64,000 nucleotides of DNA from Bispira polyomma (Eukaryota). The translations under genes and the position numbers were made by a program. The DNA lies in contig OZ287748.1 of the NCBI GenBank assembly GCA_965649765.1, forward strand, positions 10,044,001 to 10,108,000, given 5' to 3'. This document shows, one piece after another, positions 17,023-64,000 of this stretch. The notes beneath the pieces were generated by a model. It was not told the DNA's origin. It did no database searches and saw only the letters and a program-made list of their open reading frames with translations. Numbering within the stretch: the first letter of the stretch is position 1; each line of letters starts with the position of its first letter.

Positions 17023-18316
17023 AATCTTATAATATATTCAGAATTGAGACACATACGCATGATCACTAGAGACACAATGTTTGTCAGGATAAAAAGTGGT
17101 TTTCCATATAAAGGCAGAATAGTCATACTATATCTGGGCCTCAGTAGAGAGAATAATCTACACAACATAAATAAAAATCATCTTCACATTTCTAGATTTC
17201 TTATAGCAGCCTTTTGCCAATGTACACTTATTTGGTGACTTTAACTCCAAAATGTTATGGACTAGAGCACTATAGACAATCCAAACAATCATACATCACT
17301 GGCCTCCGTGATAAGTACTGTCTATTTATACATACAGAAAAACAGAAGTGCAGTCTATTTAAAAGCCTCTTGAGAGAAGTGAAACATAAATACATTCAGT
17401 CCACATGATTATTTTATATTAGTGCACAAACCTCACACACAAATACAGACCTCAAACGTCTACAGTTTTGTAAAACATATTTAACCAATATTATCAACCA
17501 ATATGGAAATGAAGTTGTTCTTGCTGCCTTCCCAGCACTTGCATGCTTAAAATAGAAACTGTAATGTATCGTGTACACATATAAGAATAATCTTTTAAAA
17601 AGGTGAGATGAAGGCCACTATGTGAAAGTCTGTTATAGCTGTGTTTCTTAGATATGAGCATTTAATCAATAATATCCTTTGTAAAAATTTGCTTTTTTAA
17701 CAATTTTGGATGTACAGTCCATCTTTAAGGGATTATGTCTTAATCACCATTTTATTTAAATTAGAAACCTGTTATAAAGAAATCCCAGAAGTCAAAATGG
17801 TGCGTTTGCTTCATCAACGTAAAACATAGTAGTTGTAAGTTAATTAATTCTTTGATTTCTCATATAAAATAAACTTCTATCTATGTAGCTTATAGCTGAC
17901 AAATATATTAACCACAAATATTAGGAAAATATAACATTTAACAACAATAAACCAAGATACATATTTCATAAATATGATCAATAAAGCTACAACCCCTAAA
18001 GAGTTCATTTTTGACCTGTCATACATGGCGGCACCCAGCATACGCTCATAGTAAAGGTTTCTAACCAAAAAGTCAAAGCAAACATGTATATATATTTTTC
18101 TTGTGTGATCACATTGGTGGGCTGACGCCTCGGCGGCAGGCTATCGGGGGCCAATTAGGCCACCTGGGGTCACGAGGACAAGTATAAAAGGCTTTGGCGC
18201 CCAACCAGCGCCTTCATTATATTTTAAGAATTCATACAATAAGAGTGTTTAACAATTGGCGCTTTACTACCCTATTTTATGTTTTTATACCTCTTTTAAT
18301 TTGTGTATGTGTGATA

Positions 18317-19324
18317 ATGCCTTCTAAAAAGGAGTTTCAGTGTAGTAGTTGCTTAGGAAAACATGAACGACCCGTAGGGACGAGATGTCGATTTAATCTG
18401 GATGCCAGCGTCGCCGATGATGTGCCCACCGTTGGTCCTGCTTCTGAGGTAATTACTGACTCCGTCTCTGAACAAATCCTACAGCAATTACAGTCACTCA
18501 ACAAGAAAATCGAAAGTATGGACCAACGTGTGCAGGTGACAGAGGCGGCGCTGTGCTCACCTAGCACCCATAAGGCATGTAGTACTTCTAATGTTAATTC
18601 TAATGTTAGCCACAGTGTTGCCAGTAATGTAGTCAATTCAGTAGAGGCGGTAGTACCTTCCTTAGATTTCCTACGATCAAACGAAAGTTTACAGTCCCAA
18701 GTCGACCAACGACTGCTGCAGCTACAGCAGCTTAACGAGCTCACTGGAGGTAAACTCAAATCTCAAAGAGGTGGTACTGAGGCCCCTATTAAAAGAAGTG
18801 TGGACTGGCCACAAAATTTTGTATTATCAGGGGCTAAGAAGGTACGTCCTACATACGACGACCTGTTTCTAGTGCAGTTTACTTCTGGGTTTATAAGATG
18901 TGTACAAGAACAAAAGGTTCCCGAGGTTAGAGAAGCCATGTTAGAATATTTGGCAAATTTAATGGATGACGCACACGATTTCTCGTGGGATGCAGCTAAG
19001 GCATCTCATGCCATCCTGCTAACAAATATGGAACTAGACCACCTTAAGTGGACTGACACGGATAAGGTTGACCGTATACGCCGGGCTCATGCCCAACGCC
19101 ATGTTTCTCATAGTTCAAATGGAACCAGTGCTTCCAAGGCCAGTTCTGGTAGCAAAATAAAATCACAAATAAAAACCCCAGGGGTAAACTGTCGGTTCTT
19201 TCAGGAGGGTAACTGTAAGTTCAATGCTAGAACCTCAGGGCAGTGGTTTAAGCACTGCTGTGAAACATGTGAGGGTCCTCACCAGACTAAGTTGTGCACA
19301 AAAAAGGGGATAGCAAAAAACTAG
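18317..19324 (+). CDS. Gag-like ORF of YR element 1
   Basis: MPSKKEFQCSSCLGKHERPVGTRC N-terminal Zn-knuckle-like motif, coiled coil, VDWPQNFV...SWDAAKASHA...RRAHAQ core, C-terminal Cys/His finger; homologous to 33467-34352. Confidence 0.8.
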   Translation: MPSKKEFQCSSCLGKHERPVGTRCRFNLDASVADDVPTVGPASEVITDSVSEQILQQLQSLNKKIESMDQRVQVTEAALCSPSTHKACSTSNVNSNVSHSVASNVVNSVEAVVPSLDFLRSNESLQSQVDQRLLQLQQLNELTGGKLKSQRGGTEAPIKRSVDWPQNFVLSGAKKVRPTYDDLFLVQFTSGFIRCVQEQKVPEVREAMLEYLANLMDDAHDFSWDAAKASHAILLTNMELDHLKWTDTDKVDRIRRAHAQRHVSHSSNGTSASKASSGSKIKSQIKTPGVNCRFFQEGNCKFNARTSGQWFKHCCETCEGPHQTKLCTKKGIAKN

Positions 19325-21809
19325 GGAGCCACTGCAGTAATGCAGTGGATAAGCCAGTGTTCTCAAGGACTGTATATAACTCAGAGTTCAAAGATTTTAA
19401 ATTGTGTGATAAAATGTATTTTAAACAGTATATATGTTTTAACAGAAATGTGAAAAGGACTTATAAAAATGTGGTTGTGAAAGGGAAACCGTGTATTCCC
19501 AGTGGTCTTGAGAAAGCCTCAGTGGTGGGCGAAATTGGGGGGAACAGTGTAGCAAAAAATTGTTTGGTCACAAACAATAAAAGGATCTGCACTAAAGTGA
19601 GGGACGTTACATTTGGCAAGGGGTTTAACAACAAGCATGTAAACAAAACTGTCTACTCGCCCAGACAGTCCGTCAGCAAGCAAAAAACCCACCAGAACAA
19701 AAGAAGTAGTATTGATTGTCCCCGGGGTGTCAAAAATAAATCAATGCGTGTAGAGAAACCTCTTGGTGTGGGTACTTCATTGTCCCCCTCCAAGGGGTTT
19801 ATTGCCTCGAGTGAAAACAATGGCAGTGGGTGTCAGGTTTCCCAATTACCCCTGCACAATAGATATGTTGTGTTAGAAACACCCGACGAGGAGGGGGTGA
19901 GTGTTGCTGACACGGGCTATTGTGTGCAGGCTTCCCCACGTGTGAAGACTTGTACAAAAACACCTAAACAAACAGATTTGAATAATTCTGATGACAAGTA
20001 TGCATTGGCAGTTCAAAGATCTTCTAATAAAAGACCACGTCTTAAGGACGCCAACCAATGCGACACCTTTAAATTGTGGGATATACAAAACAGTGGGAAG
20101 TTTGGCTTCATCCCCCTCGAGTCTTGGGGAAAACCCATTATAGATAAATCAAATAACCTATTGGCAATGGATGTGTTTACACTTCACAAGCATCTTAAAC
20201 TGGATGGGCGCCCTAATTATAGGGGACTCCAGGTCCCTGTGGCTTCTCAACTTAATGCCTCCGTGTGGGCTGAGTATTTGAGGGGTTATTGGGACTGGGA
20301 ACTCCCCCTGCTTGTAAAATATGGGTTTCCACTAGACTGTGTGAATGATCATGAGTTTAAGTCAGAACTTAACAACCACACCTCAGCTATTCAGTATCCG
20401 ACTCACGTGAAGCACTATTTAGAAGAAGAATGTCAGTTGGGTGCCATGTACGGGCCCTTTGAGGTGCCACCAATTTTAAAATTGCATACCTCCCCCTTCA
20501 TGACCAGGGAAAAATCAAGCTCAGTTAACCGTCGAGTGATCATTGATCTCAGCTGGCCTGAAGGCCATTCAGTTAATGCAGCTGTGTGTCCCACTTCTTA
20601 TCTAAACAAAGAATTTATGCTGACTTATCCGTCAATAGACACTATAACCTCACAAGTTATCAAAATGGGCAAAAGTTCACTGATTTTTAAAGCTGACATC
20701 AGTCGCGCTTTTAGGCATGTGCCTATGGATCCAAAAGAACTAAACTTGTTGGGGTTGTATTGGGATGGTTACTATGTGGACGGTTCGTTGCCCTTTGGGT
20801 ACAAGCATGGCTCGGCCATTTTCTAGAGGTTATCGGATGGTATCAAATATATAATGCACAAGGAAGGCCACCATATTACGAATTATATAGACGACCTCCT
20901 TTGTTGCTTGATTCCGTCAAAAATATACCATACCTATCACCGGCTTCAAGCCTTATTGGCTGAACTAGGTTTGACCTTGAGTGACAAAAAATTGGTCCTT
21001 CCGGCGACCCGGGTAACTTGTCTCGGTATCGACATAGACACGGTCAATTTAACCACCTCCATCCCAGATGAAAAATTACAAAATATCATGCCATGTGTGA
21101 CAGTTGGGCTGGTAAAAAATACTGCACAAAAAGGGAACTCCAGTGTTTACTGGGTTCACTCCTTTATGTATCTAAATATGTCAAGTACTCAAGATTTTTC
21201 TTGAATAGAATGCTTCACCTCCTCAGAAGTAATCATAAGAGCAAAAATTTCAAAATTACTCCGGATTTCCATAAAGATTTGACCTTGTTCAGAACTTTTT
21301 TGAAACAATTCAATGGTGTCTCTTTTTTCCACCATCACCCCACAACTGCCCTCATAGAACTGGATGCTTGTCTGACAGGTATGGGAAGGGGGGGGGTCTA
21401 TGGACAAAAGGTGTACGCGTTGCCTATACCTGCTCGATTACAGCATCAAAATATTGCTTCTTTGGAGATGTTAAACATTTTTGTGGCAATGAAATTATGG
21501 GGTAAGCAGTGGCAGGGTCAGAAGGTCCTCATAAAATGCGACAATCAAGCTGTGGTCAGTGTCCTTACTAATGGCAGGACAAGGGATAGTATCCTTGCCC
21601 TGTATTCACATAACATATTTATGTTAGCTAGCCATTTTGATGTAGAACTAAAAGTTATTCACATATTAGGTGACCACAATACCACTGCTGACCTGCTCTC
21701 ACGCTGGAAGGAGTCCACTGTTAACCATGTCCGTTTGCATTCTCTTGTAGGACCAGTTCAGGGGTGTCCTGTTACTGAACATCACCTGCTACTCAATGAA
21801 GACATATAA
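19321..21809 (+). pseudogene. Pol (RT + RNase H) of YR element 1, broken by a stop at 20824 and a frameshift near 21090
   Basis: YGFP, SPFMTREK, RVIIDLS, ADISRAFR, LPFG, YIDD, TCLGI; RNase H ELDAC, LEM, CDNQAVV, NTTADLLSR. Confidence 0.9.
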
Positions 21810-21848
21810 ATTGTCACTGTCTTCCTTGTAGTTTTTATTGTGTTTCAG

Positions 21849-22845
21849 ACAAAAATCCACTTCAAAAACTGTTGTATGACAATGCTGTGAGGAAACTGCA
21901 CTTAGCCTTCTGTAGGTCCACTGCTTGATCTTACAGAGCTATGTACAGGGTGTATCTGGCTTATGCTGCTTTCATGGATCGGCCTATAAATCAGGTGACT
22001 GTGTCTGATCTTCTATGTTTTTTGGAAGTTTTACAATTTAACTCTGTCAAACCTGCACACATGGCTAACTATCTGTCTGCCATCAGAGCCGAATCCATTG
22101 TGCATAATGTTCAAATACAGGCTTTCAGTGACCCTCGTGTTGCCTATTACCAAAAGGCTGTGCAAATGGCTGCCCCCCCTCAATGTTAAACTAAAAAAGG
22201 TAATAGATATCCCCACTTTGCAAAGCATTGTGAAAGTTTCGAAAAAACAACTTACATGGGGCTTGTTTTTAAAGCAGTATGTTATTGCTCAGTTATTTTT
22301 CATTTCTCAGGCTATCCAATCTTGTACCACATTCAACTGCTCAATTCTCTGCGCTAAAGCATTTAGCTAGGGCAGATGTCATGACCCACCCGGATAAAGC
22401 CGTTCTGTTGATTAAGTGGTCCAAAACAATGCAAAACAACAAGCAGATCAAACTCTTAACCATTCCTCGGTTACCGGGCTCACCATTATGCCCTGTTGGG
22501 TCACTGGAGGCCATTCTGGCCCTCACTCCATCGGGACCTAACTCACCATTGTTTCAAATTAAAGTCAATCACAAATGGGTGCCTCTAACTGACACCAGAG
22601 TGCGTCGCCACCTAAAAGATGTATTACTTAGACTAAAGTTGGAAAACTCTGGGCTTACCTTCCATGCTTTCCGTCGTTCAGGTGCCACTTTTGCTTTTAA
22701 TCATAACGTTAGCATACAAAACATACAAAATCATGGCACCTGGACTTCGGATTGCGTGTGGAGGTATGTCACAGATACTGTTGATGCTGGCCACCCAGTG
22801 GCTGATTCCTTTAGGCGTCATCTATCTGCCTCTGTCACTTCCTAA
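21849..22845 (+). pseudogene. tyrosine recombinase of YR element 1 (frameshifted)
   Basis: FLRLSN, WSKT, LCPV, HAFRRSGAT, HGTWTSDCVWRY (R-H-R-H-Y catalytic set). Confidence 0.9.
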
Positions 22846-23679
22846 CTCCTACTATTTTGGGGTTTGGCTGATTCTACTCAATTACTAGCTTTACTACATC
22901 TCTTTTCAGTTATTCTGTCAGACAGTTACATAATAGTACCTGTAAGTAATAGTAGTGTGACGTTTCCATAACAACTTCTTAATTCAAATTAGCAACTTAT
23001 GCTTTTACTTTTAATTGCTATACTGTAATTACTTTAACTTGTGATAAACTGTGTTTGTTATACTGTAACTAGTTAGTAATGTGCTATTAGACATTACAGT
23101 ACAGTAACGGCTGGAAAGTAAACCTAACTATAGTTTAATTTATCATAAACTGTGTTTACTGTAATTAGTCAGTAATATACTATTAAACGTTACAGTACAG
23201 TAACAACTTCCAAGTAAATTTAACTAGATTAAATGTTACAGTACAGTAACAACTTCAAAGTAAATTTAACTATATTAAACTTTGGATTTAAGGTCACCTT
23301 TGCTCATGCAACTGCCAAGGGCTGAGTAAATTTTATAACCTGGACTTTAAATTCTTGTTCTAAGGTGACCTTACCTAAATTTATGTTTAATGCTAAATAA
23401 AACATTTATCACTCTAAGGTGGCCTTTAAGTCACCTATCATTTGGTAACTTAACTTAATTACAGCGACCTTAAGTCACTTTGTACATAGTAGTAGTAGTC
23501 TAACACTTAGTTTTAATAAATAAATGTTTTACCGCATTCTGTCGTATATTTACCTTGTCTTCTTGACCTCTGACCTCTTGGCCTGTTACCGAGAAAATGG
23601 AATGTGATGTTGATTAATGCATAAACTGCCTTATGTAACAACATTCCCAATGTCAAACCCTGGTCACTCGGGAGTATAA

Positions 23680-24607
23680 TTGGGAGGATTGGAAGTTATC
23701 TTTAGCTATCAGGGCCATCGGGCCACTCACTCAAGTACCCAAGAAGAGGGGAAGGAAGAGGAGATGGTGACTTATGATGAGGAGGGAGATGGGGAGTTTG
23801 ATGTTGACAGACCTGAAGAGGCTCTGACTGTGGCACCGGAGATCCAGTTATCTCAGTTATCTCAGTTTACAGCCCTGCAAGACATTGAGATCCAAGATAC
23901 AGAGGGACAAGATTTAACTGGTGACGTCGAGGTCCTTTCAAGGAAGCAGAGGAAGGGGCAGATAAAGACAGTGCTACTGACCATCAAACAGGAGGAGGCT
24001 ATCATCGACTTCCTCAAGGACTATAAGTGGCTATACAACAAAGGCCACACTGGCTACAAGGACAACGAGAAGAAAAACGTGGCCTGGGAGGAGTTTTGCG
24101 GGGTCAGGGGGCTTGATGCTGGGGAAGTCAAGAAGTGGTTCCAGTCCAGTTCCCCCCCCACCCCCACTGAGTTGACGGACAGATATAGCTGGGTGAAGGA
24201 CAACTTCAAGTTCCTGCGGCCTCACATTATCTGTCAAGTGAACAGGACGGCTGGCTTTAATCCCATATCACCGGCCTCAGCTTCTGCTGGTCGTATATCC
24301 CAGACACCAAGTGTCCAAGTCTGACACAGACTAGGCTGACCGGGAGATAGAGGATTCTATGCTGTTGCCATTGCCGTTACCGGCCCGACTTTCACAACAG
24401 TCATCTACCTGATAAACTGTCGGTAATTTTGAACACCTTTAGGTAATAGGCCTTCAACCTGGTCAGCAACTTACATGGGGGTTAGATTTACCTATTTCCA
24501 GCAACAACCACGACAGCCTCATCCTCAGCCACCACAGCTCCAATCTCAGTCATCACAACAACCTCTTCCACCTCAGCACACCCCTGCCGAACAAGCCAGA
24601 CCAGTAG
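23680..24607 (+). pseudogene. Harbinger Myb/MADF-like DNA-binding protein (open to 24324; degenerate Q/P-rich tail to ~24607)
   Basis: EEAIIDFLKDYKWLYNKGHTGYKDNEKKNVAWEE...VKKWF (MADF-like) and FKFLRPHI. Confidence 0.7.
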
Positions 24608-24620
24608 GGTGTACACAACC

Positions 24621-24641
24621 AGCCCGTTTCAGGGCAACCCA
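24621..24641 (+). promoter_or_regulatory. degenerate histone-type 3' stem-loop downstream of the Harbinger Myb-like gene
   Basis: AGCCCG-TTTC-AGGGCA-ACCCA versus consensus GGCCCT-TTTC-AGGGCC-ACCCA (13/16 in the hairpin, plus the ACCCA flank). Confidence 0.6.
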
Positions 24642-24717
24642 AATGTTTTAAAAACATTATCTGAGCTGTTTGTTAAATGAAAAAACACCTCACTGCAAGA
24701 AGCAAATTTTAGAACAT

Positions 24718-24742
24718 TAGGTGGCCCTGAAAAGGGCCGATT
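24718..24742 (-). promoter_or_regulatory. canonical replication-dependent histone mRNA 3' stem-loop downstream of the Harbinger transposase
   Basis: Minus strand reads AATC-GGCCCT-TTTC-AGGGCC-ACCTA, 25 nt after the transposase TGA (24766-24764). Confidence 0.85.
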
Positions 24743-24763
24743 GATTTTTCTTGCAGCTCAGCT

Positions 24764-26158
24764 TCAGATTCTGTCGTTCTGCCATAGCACTGCCCCGTCA
24801 TTGAGAAAGTACCCCATCAGTAGCTCTTGTTGCATTGTTGACAGCAACACACCACCGAACCTCTGGACTAGTATTCCCAATGAATTCTCGACAACCCTTC
24901 TACCCCTGGAAATTCTGTAGTTGTATATGTGCTCATTAGGGTCCATCCCTTGTCTGCAGAAGGGCTTCATCTGCCAGGGCATTAGGGCAAATGCGTCATC
25001 ACCCAGAATGAAGAAGGAGATGGGGGGCCTAAAAGGGCCTATGGTTTCTGAAGCGGGGGAAGTTGATTGAGTGATTTTCTATCCTCTGTTTCAGTTTAGA
25101 TTGATTGAAGATCTGTGCATCTGAGCTGGAGCCACTGGATCCAAGGTCCACCCAGAGGAATCTGTATTCCGCTTCAACCAAAGCCAGCAAAACAATGGAG
25201 TGGAAACTCTTGTAATTGAAGTATTCGCTCCCCCATTTCCTTGGGCATCTAATTGCAACGTGTTTTCCATCTATGGAGCCCACGGCATTGGGCACATTTC
25301 ATATCTTCCGGTACTGAGCCTCCACCTTCTTCCAGCCTGGTGGAGTTCTTGGGCAAGACAAGAATTCCTACTGGTATTCATCAATGATTTCCTGGCACAT
25401 CTAGGGATCAACTTGGTTATAGTGTACTACCCCACTGCAAAGGAGGGGCTGTGGTGGCCTAGTGGTTAGCAGGCATTGCACTTCATAATCACTGGTCTCT
25501 CACCTCTGGGATCGGCTAGCGTTGGTTCGACTCCCGTCGATGCCTATTTGGGAAAGGTGGTAGTTTCTTACTGTGGGCTGCTGGTTTCAGTGCAGAACCT
25601 TGATCAACTGTATGCAGTGTTTCCTTCAGCGTTTCCAACTACCCGTCCCAATATAACCTAAACAGGTACTAGAGGGGACGTTAAATATCCCAACTCAATC
25701 ACCCACTGCAAAGGAGTAATGTAGAGAACTTTAGGTCTCCCCAGTGGCCAAATGTCTCAATGTTATGGCGATCTTCAGTCTAAGGGACAGTGTCTTCCTA
25801 AACCAGATGGCCTGCTTCTTGACCATCCCCCACCCTCCTCTCCATCTCTTGGAATGCATTAAGGGACATCCTCAGGAAGTTATGGTATAACTCCCCAATC
25901 TTGTAGTTCCAGGAATGGGAGAAGTGCAGAGTAATACAAATGCTCCTCACGTTGCTTGAGCCATGGCTTCACCCAGAATCAACGTCTGGCCCTTTCTTCT
26001 GTGACGACTTTTCCTTGACCTATATTTTCTGTGTCTGTCTCTCTTCTTAACATGTCTATTCTTCTTTGCAGATGTAAAAAATCCATCACTTGCAGTCTCA
26101 TTGAAGTCATTATAACTTGAAGTACCCTGATAATCTCTATTACTCTTTGTAGAACCAT
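24764..26158 (-). pseudogene. Harbinger (DDE_Tnp_4-type) transposase, with stops, frameshifts and a SINE insertion
   Basis: [74 protein letters not shown]. Confidence 0.9.
25446..25701 (+). mobile_element. young tRNA-derived SINE inserted in the transposase
   Basis: TGGCCTAGTGG A-box, GGTTCGACTCC B-box; 15-bp TSD CCCACTGCAAAGGAG at 25431 and 25702; closely related to 45838-46088. Confidence 0.92.
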
Positions 26159-27209
26159 CTTGACAATTAAATCTGTCTGGATTTATATATAGGGTTCATA
26201 GGTGACAAACTTTTCCACCAACCTTAATTACCAGGATTTGTCAGAATAAATGGGCGGCCTCCCCAAGTTATTGTAAATCACGCCGAGTGGATCGGGCGGC
26301 CTCCCCGAGTTATCCTAACAATCTTAAGCAGTACTACCGACTTATCTCCCCGGACCAGGGAGGTCGGGGCAGCCGTCGAGAGTATTCACATTTATAATCG
26401 CGTGACGCACATGTTTCCGCACTTTTCTTAAAAAAATCGGAGGCAAATGCTGCCACAGACAACATTTATTGCAAGAGGAAGTAGTAACCCTAAAGACGTT
26501 GTTTCATAAAAATTTAATTTGCTAATAATGCAATAAATTAAACATAATGGGGAAATATGTATGTAATATTTGTACAAATTCTAATTATATAAATATATAG
26601 GGTATACTATTTAGATATGATTTTCTCTACCAGGTCACTATAACTTTATAGAATACCTTTATAATTATTTACTTAAAACTTAATTGTGTTACCATTAAGT
26701 TATTGAGAAATATGTCTACACATGGATGACAGACTTTTAGCACAGTGTCAAAGTGGAACGTTCTTAATAATCACAAACAACATAATCATGCAAATAATTA
26801 CAATTTGAACTTTATATAAATACATGCAATATTAAAAGCTTCTATTAATGGAATTGGACACCTTATAATCGTATGTATTCATTAATAAAATCAAAATTAG
26901 GTTACCACCAACTACTTAATAATGGTAGGTTTTTAGTATTGTGTGAATTTTGTGACTCCTAATTAGTATGACCAAACGGGTGAACTTTTTATATCCACTT
27001 GACAGATTCTGTACACCCAGTTTATGCATAGAATCTGGGTGGTGTATTAAGTTATATTTTTCACTGACTAAAGGCATAAAAGAGTGAATAATTTCAACAC
27101 GTCTTGCATGCAATTTGAGACTCAGATTCTAGTTTCATAATAAAGGGGCGAATATACCTGTCCTTTTAAAATTTGTTGAAAAACTTTCAAGAAAATCTAA
27201 TCTGTAAGA

Positions 27210-33245: not shown

Positions 33246-34352
33246 ATGCCGAAAAAATCTCAGTGTAATAAAAAAGTGGGAAAAAGTGTACAATGGATGT
33301 CGAAGTCGGGACTGATTTTATTGTGCGGGAAAGCAATACACCAACTCTGGCCCAAAAAGTGGTGGACACTCCTGTTAACGGGTAGAGGGGATGTAGATCT
33401 CAAGGGCAGGTAGCAGACCAGGTAGAGGACAGCATACAGCTTCAGATACTGCAACAACTTCAAAAGGTGAATTCGAGGCTTGATGCATTGGAGGAACAAG
33501 TAGCCGAGTCCAGTTCCAGGAGCCAGAGATCAGCACCACGGCAGGCAGGACACAAGTTAAGTAGAACAGTTTCCAGTAGAGTGTCTCAGAGTCATTATAG
33601 TAATGATAAAAGTAAAAGCCCAGTACAGTCAGATAACGAGTCATCAGATGAGGAGCACATGTTGCTTAGGTTAGCGGTCCTTAGAAATTCAGTTGCATTA
33701 CAGCGTCAAGTTGATGATAGAGTCAGGGATCTAGAACAAAGTAATCAGACAGGTACTGAGCATGTAGGGAAAATTAAGTCCAAAAGGGGGGGCCCTGTTG
33801 AAGTTTTGGTAAAACATAAGGTGGCTTGGCCCCAGGAGGTCACACTGGGTGGTACAACAAGAGTTAGGTTGTCTTATGATCAATTGTCTATGTCCCAGTG
33901 GACGCAGGGTTTTTGTAAAAACATTATTGATGAACCTGATCAGGTTATAAGAGAGAAAATGCTTTTCTATATGTCAGATTTGATGGAGGACGTCACTGAT
34001 TTCAGTTGGTCTGGGGCTAAAGCTACCGCACGCAGTGCTACTGTGTGAAATGGAGCGGGGTACCCTTACTTGGCATGACACTAACCGTATTGACAGAATT
34101 AGAAGGGCTCATGCCCAAAAACATACAAGTAGTGCTAATGGTGCTAAGAATTGGGTAAAAAATAATGATGGTCACAAAACATGGTTCTGTAAGTTTTTTC
34201 AAAATGGCACATCTCAGCACACGAAGGACCATGAAGTCAATGGCAAAATCCACAAACACATTTGTTCACATTGCATACAGCAAGGTCGTCTATTAGTGCA
34301 TGCTGAGAAAGACTGTGTATTCACTAAGAAAACACAGCCAAAAAACGAGTAG
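33246..34352 (+). pseudogene. Gag-like ORF of YR element 2 (frameshifted)
   Basis: KIKSKRGG..VAWPQE..FSWSGAK..RIRRAHAQ..CKFFQNG..HICSHC, homologous to element 1 Gag. Confidence 0.8.
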
Positions 34353-36467
34353 AGGGCTGTCCCCCAAGGTTTAAACAGGAGGGCAGCTGTGGTAAAATTG
34401 GTGGTGGTGTAAAATCCATTGTACATAATGATTTTAAAGTAAGTAAAATGCTAGTGGGTTCAAATGAACAGAATAGTGTAAATGAAAGAGTGGTAAAGCA
34501 CGGCCCAGTGTATAGGGCTTCCAGATATGTTTACAGTTCAGCAATGAGAAAAGCTGACATAGATAGCTTGTTTGCTCGTCCATTAAGCGAGTTAGTTCGC
34601 GTTTATAAAGCACTGGTCAGTAATGTCGCAGGCAGATCATATGCTAGTGTGGTTAAAACCGGCCGTAAATGCATGTCGACTAACAAGCGAGTAGCAAATA
34701 GATATTTGCCTGATACCAAACTTACTATTTCTAGTGAGGGTGAACAAAACGTGAAACGTGGTGACAACAATGTGTCAGTTTGTGATGACAAACATAAAAC
34801 CAGTGACACAAAAACTCAAGATATTGACGTAGACAGTTCGAAGTTTGCACAGAAAATAGTGGGAAGCGGAAATTCTCAAGAAACAAAATTATTGTTTGAT
34901 ATCAATAATATGGGAGAAGATAAATTTATCAACTCCATTATTTTTAACAATGTAAAAGATCTAACAAAGAAAGTGCTGTCGGAATGTAACAGCTTTAAGC
35001 TGTGGCGGGCACAGTCAGAGTTCAATTTCGGCTTTATTCCACTGACTGATCCAATGTCATCAGAAAATAAAACTCATGTCAACGCTACTATTGATTGTCC
35101 TATTGCATGTCATAATGAAGTCAAAAAATGGGGTAGACCAAATTTTTTGGGGGCTCGTATTCCTGTCAAATCACAGTTGAATATTACAAATTAGAAAGAA
35201 ATGTTAAAAGACTATTGGGATCAGCAGTTAATCGAATTGCTTGAATTTGGATTCCCTTTAGGTTTCAATAGAAACTGCAAGCTCAGTAGTGACGTTGACA
35301 ATCACAAATCAGCTACACAGTACCCGAATGATGTGGACGTGTATATTGCTGAAGAAAAAGCACATGGTGCAATCATTGGTCCTTTTAAGGAAAATCCCAT
35401 AATAAATTGCCATCATTCACCATTTATGACTCGTCCCAAACCCAATTCAGAAAATAGACGAGTCATCATTGACCTTAGTTGGCCAAAAGGCGAGTCGATA
35501 AATGCAGGGGTCGACAAAAATGGTTACATGGGTACTGATTTCAAACTCAGCTTTCCTACTATTGATAATTTGACAGATGAGCTCACAAAGTTGGGAAAAG
35601 GTGCCAATATATATAAGCTAGACGTGAGTAGGGCCTTTAGGCATGTGAAAATTGACCCTGGGGATTACGATTTGCTCGGCTTACCTGGGTATTCTGATAG
35701 ACACCGTTCAAGGTACGGTATCAATACCGGAGGACAAATTGCAATAAATTCCAAAAACTCTCAGGAAATGGCAAACTAAAGTATATTGTACAAAAAAGAA
35801 ACTGCAGTCATTACTGGGCCAGTTGCTTTACGTGCACAAATGCGTTAAACCAGCAAGGTGTTTTTTTAATAGAATGCTACAGTTGCTTAGAGACGTGGTT
35901 AATCCCAGTAAAATAATCCTGACACAGGATTTTAAAAGAGACCTAAGGTGGTTTGATCGGTTTCTCCCGTTGTATAATGGAGTATCCATATACCTTCACA
36001 AAATCATAGATCATACGTTAGAACTTGATGCTTGTCTTATTGGGTTGGGAGGGAGATGGAAAAATCTCGTATATCACCTTCCCATAACAAAGTTTTTCAG
36101 AAATTTGGGCATTGTCCAACTGGAAATGGTTAACATTTTGGTAGCGTTAAGATTGTATCGAAGTTACTGGTACAGTAAAAAGGTGCTTGTTAAATGTGAT
36201 AATGAAGCAGTGGTGAAAGTGCTAAATTCAGGTAGAGCTAAAGACCCTTTCTTGTCGGCGTGTGCTAGAAACATATGGTATACAGCTGAATTGGCAGATA
36301 TAGAGTTACAGTATGTGCATGTCTTAGGCAAGAATAACAGAGTAGCTGATTTGTTGTCTAGATGGACCCAGTCCAGTAGTGATGTTCATGAATTACACTC
36401 ATTGGTGGAAGATCCATTATGGTTACAGGTTAACATTGAGTTGACAGAAATTGATAGTGAATTGTAG
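34346..36467 (+). pseudogene. Pol (partial RT + RNase H) of YR element 2
   Basis: FGFP, SPFMTRPK, RVIIDLS and LDVSRAFR are present; the sequence jumps from DLLGL to LGILIDT near 35683, so LPFG and YxDD are missing; RNase H ELDAC, CDN and ADLLSR are present. Confidence 0.88.
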
Positions 36468-36519
36468 ATATTTAGGTGACGTAATTATGTAACACAGATA
36501 CTATACTTTGTACTTGCAG

Positions 36520-37500
36520 AGACAACAGCACTGACTCAATTGCAGACGCAAGCCAGTCACAGATTACATACAGCCTTCAGGCCAAAGGACCAGAAAGTGT
36601 TGTGTTATGTTATTCAAGACATTCTTGGCTTTCTGTATATGTGTAAATTTGGCTTTGGAGGCCTTAGATGTAAATAATGTGCTTTCATTCTTAGAATATC
36701 TAGTAGAAAACAAAGTTTCAATATACATGGTTGCTAATTATGTTGCGGCCATCAAAGCTATGTGCATTGTGTATGATCTGCCATTCAGCGGTTTGGATCA
36801 CCCAAAAATCAAATACTTTATAAAATCCTTAAAAGTAAATAGAGTTCATAAAATTGTAAAACGCAATGTCATGGATGTTGACACGTTGAAATTACTGGTG
36901 TCGCAGTGTAATCATATAAGTAATTCACATACATTCAAAGCCATTTTTCTCACCGGTTTTTTCGGCTTCTTGAGGTTATCCAATATAGCTCCACATGCAA
37001 TAGCAGAATTTGATCCATCACATCATTTTACAGGAGGCGACGTCTTCTTTGATGGAAGCTCAGTTAGGTTGCTCATTAAGTGGTCTAAAACATTACAAAC
37101 CAGAGATAAGATACGAGTATTAACTTTGCCAAGATTAGGCTCAGCTGTCATCTGCCCTTATGCGGCTTTAAAGAAATTATTCAAACTTTACAATCCTGGG
37201 AAATCAGATCCATTATTTCAGTGTAGCATAAAAAGGGGTTGGCAGATTGTGACTGACGCTAGGGTCAGAAAAACTTTGTCTGGCTTGAACACAAAATTGG
37301 GTTTTCACAAGAACTATTTTACATTTCATGCATTTCGGTGTTCAGGTGCCACATTAGCGTATAATAAGCATGTACCAATTCAACAAATTAAACAACATGG
37401 CACCTGGACGTCCGACTGTGTCTGGAGATACATACAGTTTGATCCTAATGGGGGCACACAGGTGGCCTCTGCCTTCCAACAAATACTACATAATGCTTAA
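36520..37500 (+). CDS. tyrosine recombinase of YR element 2 (open 36607-37500)
   Basis: GFLRLSN, WSKT, ICPY, HAFRCSGAT (second catalytic Arg reads Cys), HGTWTSDCVWRY. Confidence 0.88.
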
Positions 37501-62579: not shown

Positions 62580-64000
62580 GAATAATAATAATATATCAGA
62601 CTTTTTAGCGCTTATTTTCGTTGTAACGAATTCTAAGGCGCAAAAAAACCACAACCAGAGTCGAAAAACAAAGGTGATAGACATAAGGAAGTCGTCATCA
62701 ATGCGTCCACCGAGAATGGGAAAGAGACTATGGAGGGAATGCATCATTGAACAGATAGGTCTTTAAACTGCGCCAAAAGGAATACAGGGACGGAGCTGTC
62801 CTAATGCATTGCATTGCGATGCATTGCAATTTCTAATGTGTTGAGGCAAACTATTCCATAGGGTAGGGGCATCATTTGCAAAACTTTTATCAAAGTGAAC
62901 CTTTGACTTGTGTACTTTGGACTTATATTATTTTGGAACAAGAAGGAATCTATTTTTGGGAACGGCTCTCCTGGTGTTGACATTGCACTTGTAGTAACTC
63001 AAGTGTGGTTCAAAGTATTTAGGCAAACCTGAATCGAGAAACTTATATACTATTGTAGCACTTTTAAGAACACACCGATACCTAACAGGGAGCCAGTGGA
63101 GTGACTTCAGAATTGGTGAAGCATTTGAAAACTGAGCAGAACAACTGACCAGACGTGCCAATGAGTTCTGGATGCATTGCAATTTCTTTAGGTCCTTTTT
63201 GGTCAAGCTGCGATAAAGTGAATTACAGTAGTCCAGTCTGCTACCAACAAGAGCATTTCCTGCAGTTATTGCAACCGATTTTGGAAGGTACCTCCTGATT
63301 CTCCTAAGGTTTCTGAGACCCATGAAGCATGACTTACACACTGATTGAATATGACTGGAAAATGAAAAATCACTGTCAAACAAAACTCCCAGGTTCCTCA
63401 CTTTATCAGTTGTGGATAACAGTGTCCCAAGAATATTTGCAGGAAAAGAATTTGACAGTTCAGCACGTTGAGTGCCCGACCCAAACAATATGAATTCGGT
63501 TTTAGCAGGGTTCAGCTTGAGCTTATTTAGCGCCATCCAATTTTGAACATCTGCTAAGCATTTCTGAAGGACTTCCAGGGCACTGATTGATGTGTTAGGA
63601 GTAAGGTGCACGTAAATCTGTGTATCATCTGCATAGAAGTGATACTTTAGAGAAGAATAGGAGGAAATAATTTTGCTAAGGGGTGTAGTATATAATGAAA
63701 ATAGGAGTGGTCCAAGCACAGACCCTTGCGGCACACCGAATTTCAGCACTTGTAAGTCAGACAGAATATCGCCAATTTTAATAGACTGGTACCTGTCTGT
63801 CAAGTAGGAAACAAATCATTGCAAGACCTTCAGACCAAACCAGGTTTTTAGTCTTTCAATGAGGACATTGCGATCAATAGTATCGAAAGCAGCTGATAAG
63901 TCTAACAGTACTAATGCAGTGGAAACACCCTTTGATAAAGACATATGAATATCGTTTTTAATATAAAGCAGAGCTGTTTCAGTTGAATGGTATTTTTTAT
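62580..64000 (-). mobile_element. L2/CR1-type LINE, RT and 3' end
   Basis: LDLSAAFDTID, GVPQGSVLGPLLF, YADDTQIY, LKLNPAKTE, SRLDYCNS, LHWLPV; tail GCGCTAAAAAGTCTG-(ATT)n near 62580. Confidence 0.92.

Follow-up and report, generated by a model that had tools for sequence, protein, structure and literature searches.

The closest described system is the 3' end that replication-dependent histone mRNAs have in metazoans (RF00032; SLBP, U7 snRNP). A related arrangement is found in H2A.X, which has dual 3' ends, a stem-loop and then a downstream poly(A) signal. Replication-dependent histone mRNAs have been described as the one kind of cellular mRNA known to lack poly(A) (PMC4604434), and the G of the second G-C pair of the stem (G7) is the base-specific contact of SLBP (PMC10388802). 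Among transposons, maize Ac/Ds shows replication-coupled transposition via methylation sensing, a known route to copy gain (PMC5371812).

The window analysed here, a 64,000-nt stretch of Bispira polyomma DNA, contains a PIF/Harbinger element whose two convergent genes are each followed by a histone-type stem-loop. These ends resemble the metazoan histone 3' end in the stem, the U-rich 4-nt loop, the invariant second G-C and top U-A pairs, the A-rich 5' flank, the ACC 3' flank, the host-spaced downstream element, the short distance from the stop codon and the apparently intronless transposase gene. The stems themselves are distinct, mostly GGCCCT/AGGGCC or AGTCCT/AGGACT in the Harbingers, whereas the host histones carry GGCTCT/AGAGCC.

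Stem-loops of the window copy

A decayed, apparently intronless PIF/Harbinger transposase gene was located on the minus strand at 24764-26158 (DDE_Tnp_4, 46 bits; putative ATG at 26158). Its reading ends in WQNDRI and a TGA stop at 24764-24766, followed by a 25-nt gap ending in AATC and then by the stem-loop GGCCCT-TTTC-AGGGCC at 24723-24738 (minus strand), with a 6-bp stem, a TTTC loop and ACC as its 3' flank (24722-24720; the sequence reads ACCTA). The CAATC 5' flank is identical to that of the host H2A. Under the rules of PMC10388802, the 6-bp stem, 4-nt loop, G7, top U-A pair and flanking adenines of a histone 3' end were all present. The stem-loop was the sole Rfam match of the window at gathering level, scoring 34.1 bits against Histone3 (E 4.3e-6), barely above the gathering cut-off of 34. 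No strict stem-loop occurred in 300 simulated order-2 Markov windows, and about 4e-5 would be expected per window.

The partner gene is a decayed MADF/Myb-SANT gene that runs convergently on the plus strand (23680-24607). It consists of a 214-aa ORF (23680-24324) and a broken Q/P/T-rich tail, its TAG stop (24605-24607) being placed by comparison with other copies. The MADF profile score of this ORF was 19.7 bits, below the cut-off of 22, and tblastx showed a resemblance to the MADF-annotated genes of loci L097 and L098. A second, decayed histone-type stem-loop (24621-24636, plus strand) ends the gene 13 nt past the putative stop. An intact sequence resembling the histone downstream element starts 11 nt past this stem (24647-24670, plus strand); its duplex with the candidate U7 described below was estimated at -17.8 kcal/mol (p 0.003). 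This arrangement of stem-loop and downstream element is repeated in three other copies. On the transposase side, a remnant of the spacer and of the start of the downstream element (24707-24722, minus strand) was truncated by the deletion of most of the intergenic DNA, and its duplex with the candidate U7 reached -8.2 kcal/mol, against -22.8 kcal/mol for the family consensus.

The transposase gene is broken by stops and frameshifts; it lacks 192 nt, in frame, at about 24826 and is interrupted by a SINE. Profile searches were run on unbroken ORF pieces. Upstream, the promoter and subterminal DNA of the transposase side occupies 26159-26455 (minus strand) and includes a TATA box; homology to other copies stops at 26455. 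The copy lacks both termini, the terminal repeat being lost, and is a dead relic. The inserted SINE is an unrelated tRNA-type element (25431-25716, plus strand) flanked by a 15-bp target duplication (25431-25445 and 25702-25716); box A/B-like motifs were seen within it (25445-25701), and its read depth was extremely high relative to unique DNA. Three sequencing runs covered the unique flanks evenly, so these runs behave as DNA. Other mobile sequences were observed in the window: two DIRS-like retroelements (18194-22845 and 33467-37500, both plus strand), whose ORFs are of the RNase H-like and tyrosine recombinase types and of which the first lies directly left of the Harbinger relic, and reverse transcriptase fragments at 433-1533 and 62928-63803 (minus strand). 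Between the first DIRS-like element and the MADF gene, at 23015-23430, there are AT-rich repeats of 46-96 nt and short palindromes.

An earlier, sequence-only reading had reported an exact stem-loop 25 nt past the stop, the absence of any histone CDS and the decay of the copy. The first was confirmed by the sequence and the Histone3 score, the second by a scan of the long window ORFs, in which no histone family was found, and the third by the lesions listed above. Two further statements stood in part. No downstream element had been evident in that reading, which is true of the transposase side and is explained by the deletion about 16 nt past the stem; the MADF side is intact and the family has such an element. 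Likewise, AATAAA had been called missing between the genes, and indeed neither AATAAA nor ATTAAA occurs there in the window copy, but the family consensus carries AATAAA 84 and 108 nt beyond the stem. Four of five families carry such a signal (AATAAA or ATTAAA) 84-164 nt past the stem, so the lack of a downstream poly(A) signal that is expected of a histone gene was not observed. The AATAAA of the family could give dual 3' ends.

Harbinger family and its relatives

At least 40 relatives with 78-88% identity were found in the 1.035-Gb genome, and a consensus was derived from 29 of them plus the window copy. Since its translation is open through to WQNDRI and the stop, this is the native end of the transposase; the possibility that it is a deletion artefact was ruled out. 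Downstream of the hairpin, the consensus reads ACC, seven bases and then TCCAAAAACATTATCTGAGC. The Harbinger-type stem gave 648 exact matches in the genome, and the stem plus CAARAACA gave 623, of which only a sample was tied to Harbingers; reversed controls gave 0. The spacer was 9 nt in 97 and 8 nt in 3 of the 100 matches listed, and its sequence varied widely. Of ten inspected Histone3 loci outside arrays, from among the best matches in the genome, eight were linked to Harbingers and two were histone genes; several of the Harbinger-linked loci belong to families 59-72% identical to that of the window. The signal is therefore a family feature present in hundreds of copies, contrary to the case that had been named as fatal to the sequence-only reading, a stem-loop in one copy alone. 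That the hairpin arose by chance, or belongs to host histone DNA beside an insertion, might be suspected from a window match that just reaches the Rfam cut-off. This can be given practically no weight in view of the hundreds of copies, the several genomes and the position of the signal, which is inside the element between its two genes, and it was refuted by the family consensus, the 648 and 623 genome matches and the elements of other genomes. No exact stem match was found near most of the top DDE_Tnp_4 hits on C1-C2, so that other Harbinger families here lack the exact signal or use variants of it.

In all cases inspected, the signal had the sense orientation of the gene next to it, and it lies internally, between the two genes and far from the termini. 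A shared terminus was seen on the transposase side in 12 copies, eight of which start with (T/A)GGGGC(TG) after TWA, on that one side only. Several stem-plus-element matches are oriented convergently to transposase hits and lie 1-1.5 kb downstream of them. The transposase is a single ORF in two relatives from other datasets (L145 and L095) and likewise in relatives that lack the signal. No intron-sized gaps interrupt the colinear MADF genes of elements that bear the signal; those of signal-less relatives have introns according to automatic gene models. At G000:C2:10.85-11.23 Mb, moreover, five stem-plus-element matches that share one spacer were observed at intervals of about 80-100 kb and in mixed orientation, which suggests segmental duplication or local hopping.

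Convergent stem pairs occur about 0.4-1 kb apart in the genome, and the two 3' regions within a family are near-inverted copies, so that read-through transcripts would fold back. This geometry underlies the main rival to the explanation favoured below. The processing by SLBP and U7 would be the same, but the benefit would be a compact and exact 3' end, which would prevent convergent overlap, dsRNA and silencing, or would provide an export and translation route for intronless mRNAs. Avoidance of overlap needs a signal on both ends, and both carry one. On the other hand, convergent relatives without the signal exist, and cell-cycle control is the default for mRNAs bound by SLBP (PMC4604434). We consider this benefit possible but doubtful.

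Three other datasets were positive for the stem-loop, at 43-56% protein identity, where neutral sites are saturated. The transposases of the long-read assembly ERZ22147071 (51-56% identical) end in AGTCCT-TTTC-AGGACT with a similar downstream element. This assembly represents a different host: nothing in the present genome is more than 69% identical to its L089 family. One of its elements (L090) bears a second signal on the opposite strand. Another (L145; DDE_Tnp_4, 98 bits) encodes an intact 424-aa transposase followed by two tandem stem-loops (L145:5293-5331), the downstream element being in register only for the second. Perfect hairpins were also found in L095 (SRR28466851; L095:1785-1830) and L104 (JGI metagenome; L104:1632-1665). 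There, the downstream sequence differs: it is purine-rich, of the AAAAGAG/AAGAG type, and does not pair with the candidate U7 of this genome, and it may track another U7. Across elements, the distance from stop to stem ranged from 17 to 109 nt.

The stem-loop was absent from relatives in six named molluscs, Lingula and Ciona, with full flanks for five of the molluscs and for Lingula and Ciona; the signal-less named relatives are those of Mercenaria, Mytilus, Saccostrea, Littorina, Batillaria, Lingula and Ciona. A first metagenome scan gave no match, and no stem-loop was found at many metagenome Harbinger loci. As many related Harbingers do without it, the signal is dispensable for transposition. 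In the transposase tree the trait clusters, but the tree is poorly resolved. A one-clade test gave p-AU 0.043 with untested taxa interspersed, so that the origin may have been single or repeated.

Selection on the signal and host processing genes

Identity at four-fold degenerate sites is only 18-44% from family to family and the DNA past the signal aligns at shuffle level, yet every stem is paired at 6/6 positions. In an alignment of 15 rows, three of them histone genes, 90 of the 90 cells were paired and three pairs showed double changes and one a U-G; the pairing and covariation scores were reached by none of 500 shuffles. The invariant positions include the second G-C pair, the U-A pair at the top of the stem and, in the loop, the first and third U. 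Variation in the downstream element is of the A/G and C/T kind, as G-U wobble would allow. It is well supported by these comparisons that selection acts on an RNA-level histone-type 3' end. Two alternatives, a DNA-level site in the form of a palindrome to which the element's own MADF protein binds and a captured histone 3' end that persists as a neutral relic, have some points in their favour: as DNA the stem is palindromic, histone arrays are so abundant that capture from them is a plausible origin, and duplication or conversion is suggested by two 3' ends that are nearly identical within a family. Both fit poorly with stems, loop and spacing that are kept while neutral sites are saturated and flanks are unalignable. 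One variant, moreover, holds a pair only as U-G, and the signal is internal, far from the termini and always sense to the adjacent gene where inspected. Such an origin of the conservation is therefore very unlikely.

The host H1, H2A, H2B, H3 and H4 genes were found to end in GGCTCT-TTTC-AGAGCC, ACC, nine bases, CAARAACA (slightly changed in H2A) and a CTGAGC-like tail. The transposon signal agrees with the host signal in sequence and spacing, and the 9-nt spacer is shared with H1, H3 and H4. A tandem array of at least 60 units of 1727 bp, each with an H1 gene and a stem-loop, was observed at G000:C4:54.707-54.812 Mb (L040-L060); no other histone ORF was present in the unit read, the H1 protein has its nearest matches among molluscs and annelids, and the core histones lie in separate arrays with a period of about 4.5-4.9 kb. 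The transposon copies are dispersed, unlike the clustered histone genes, and neither the clustering nor the promoter of histone genes was found on them. An 8-mer comparison with five host histone promoters revealed nothing consistently shared beyond TATA-like words. Capture of a histone promoter by the transposon is accordingly unsupported, the TATA box alone being in common.

An SLBP gene was found in the host genome. For U7, the Rfam model returned only repeat-derived matches below the cut-off. A pattern made of the complement of the shared downstream element and the Sm consensus RUUUNUCYNG (PMC5054213) gave exactly two matches in the genome and 0 in the control, each with AAATTTGTC(T/C)TG. 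These candidate U7 snRNA genes are 133 kb apart (G000:C5:22420645-22420675 and C5:22553899-22553929, plus strand) and show the element complement followed by a U7-type Sm site; candidate U7 genes are thereby gained for a lineage where Rfam finds none. The candidate U7 would pair from +11 past the stem both with four host histones, at -14 to -22 kcal/mol, and with the majority of Harbinger ends, at -11 to -25 kcal/mol. Pairing energy alone is not decisive, since signal-less controls reach -9 to -17 kcal/mol if their best-pairing stretch within 300 nt is taken. The pairing test is also partly circular, as the loci were found using the downstream element itself; two parts of the case for a candidate U7 are independent of it, namely the Sm site next to the complement and the pairing register.

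Proposed use of the histone pathway

The adoption of a histone 3'-end signal by a group of PIF/Harbinger transposons, on both convergent genes, is strongly supported by the sequence. This group probably borrows the replication-linked histone RNA machinery. The sequence-only reading had proposed such a co-option, and its presence on both genes, in many families, with host spacing, predicted pairing to a candidate host U7 and compensatory changes where neutral sites are saturated speaks in favour of the proposal, while dispersed copies without histone promoter motifs other than a TATA box and the AATAAA of the family speak against it. The best overall explanation, which we hold with some confidence, would be SLBP/U7-type processing of both mRNAs that couples them to replicating cells. 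As for its parts, actual use of the SLBP/U7 pathway by these transposons is judged likely, and replication coupling as the selected benefit somewhat favoured.

According to this proposal, the hairpin would be bound by SLBP, the U7 snRNP would base-pair from about 11 nt past the stem and CPSF73 would cleave about 5 nt past it. The resulting poly(A)-less mRNAs would be exported, translated and destroyed in the manner of histone mRNA. The transposase and its DNA-binding partner would then be produced jointly in cells that replicate their DNA (S phase, oocytes and cleavage embryos), where cut-and-paste transposition from replicated into unreplicated DNA would yield more copies. Dispersed genes may go without the help of a histone locus body; such help may be missing here, because the copies are dispersed and share no promoter motifs with histones.

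The same pathway could serve as a brake, in which U7/SLBP-directed cleavage, decay or repression silences the element in non-dividing cells, either as self-restraint or as host control. Rapid decay is part of the histone pathway, and human U7 represses LTR12 via HDE-like motifs (10.1101/2023.08.25.554787). However, the LTR12 mechanism acts on transcription and needs no stem-loop, whereas the full two-part signal is present here, in sense orientation, after each stop codon. A purely harmful signal would also be expected to decay, yet this one is conserved. A braking role is hence unlikely, and the coupling of expression to replication is preferred. Its fullest form is given slightly more credence than its opposite: SLBP and U7 snRNP would process the genes of these Harbingers as the first protein-coding genes other than those of histones, both proteins would be timed to replication, their mRNAs would be under-seen by poly(A) RNA-seq, and the downstream element, which differs in L095 and L104, would be re-tuned to the U7 of each host.

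If confirmed, these findings would break the exclusivity of the SLBP/U7 pathway, which is regarded as histone-only, and would show whether histone-type processing can work beyond histone clusters. They would also provide a mechanism for copy gain by cut-and-paste elements in animals, and would mean that active transposons are under-counted by poly(A)-based surveys. A 2026 survey of the histone 3'-end machinery makes no mention of transposons. No precedent for a transposon with histone-type mRNA ends was found in the searchable literature (Repbase reports and subscription journals lie outside this scope), in which no transposon is known to couple to replication via mRNA processing.

Compared with other PIF/Harbinger transposons, the present elements have the usual DDE_Tnp_4 transposase, MADF/Myb-SANT gene and many dispersed copies, and probably the usual terminus ((T/A)GGGGC after TWA in 8 of 12 copies, on the transposase side), and differ in the histone-type 3' ends on both genes, which are absent from the named relatives tested. 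They share with maize Ac/Ds and methylation-sensing bacterial elements (PMC5371812) the proposed copy gain from cut-and-paste behind the fork; those elements sense hemimethylated DNA at the protein-DNA level, whereas the coupling proposed here would act at the mRNA level. LTR12 (10.1101/2023.08.25.554787) is likewise a mobile element with U7-complementary motifs, but these are retroelement LTRs, subject to transcriptional repression and without a stem-loop. The stem-loop plus downstream poly(A) signal of the family consensus is found in H2A.X as well, although that is a histone gene. In contrast to metazoan histone 3' ends, the histone-type ends described here are on dispersed transposon genes with no shared histone promoter motif. 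Each of the parts is known, and their combination is new within the searchable literature.
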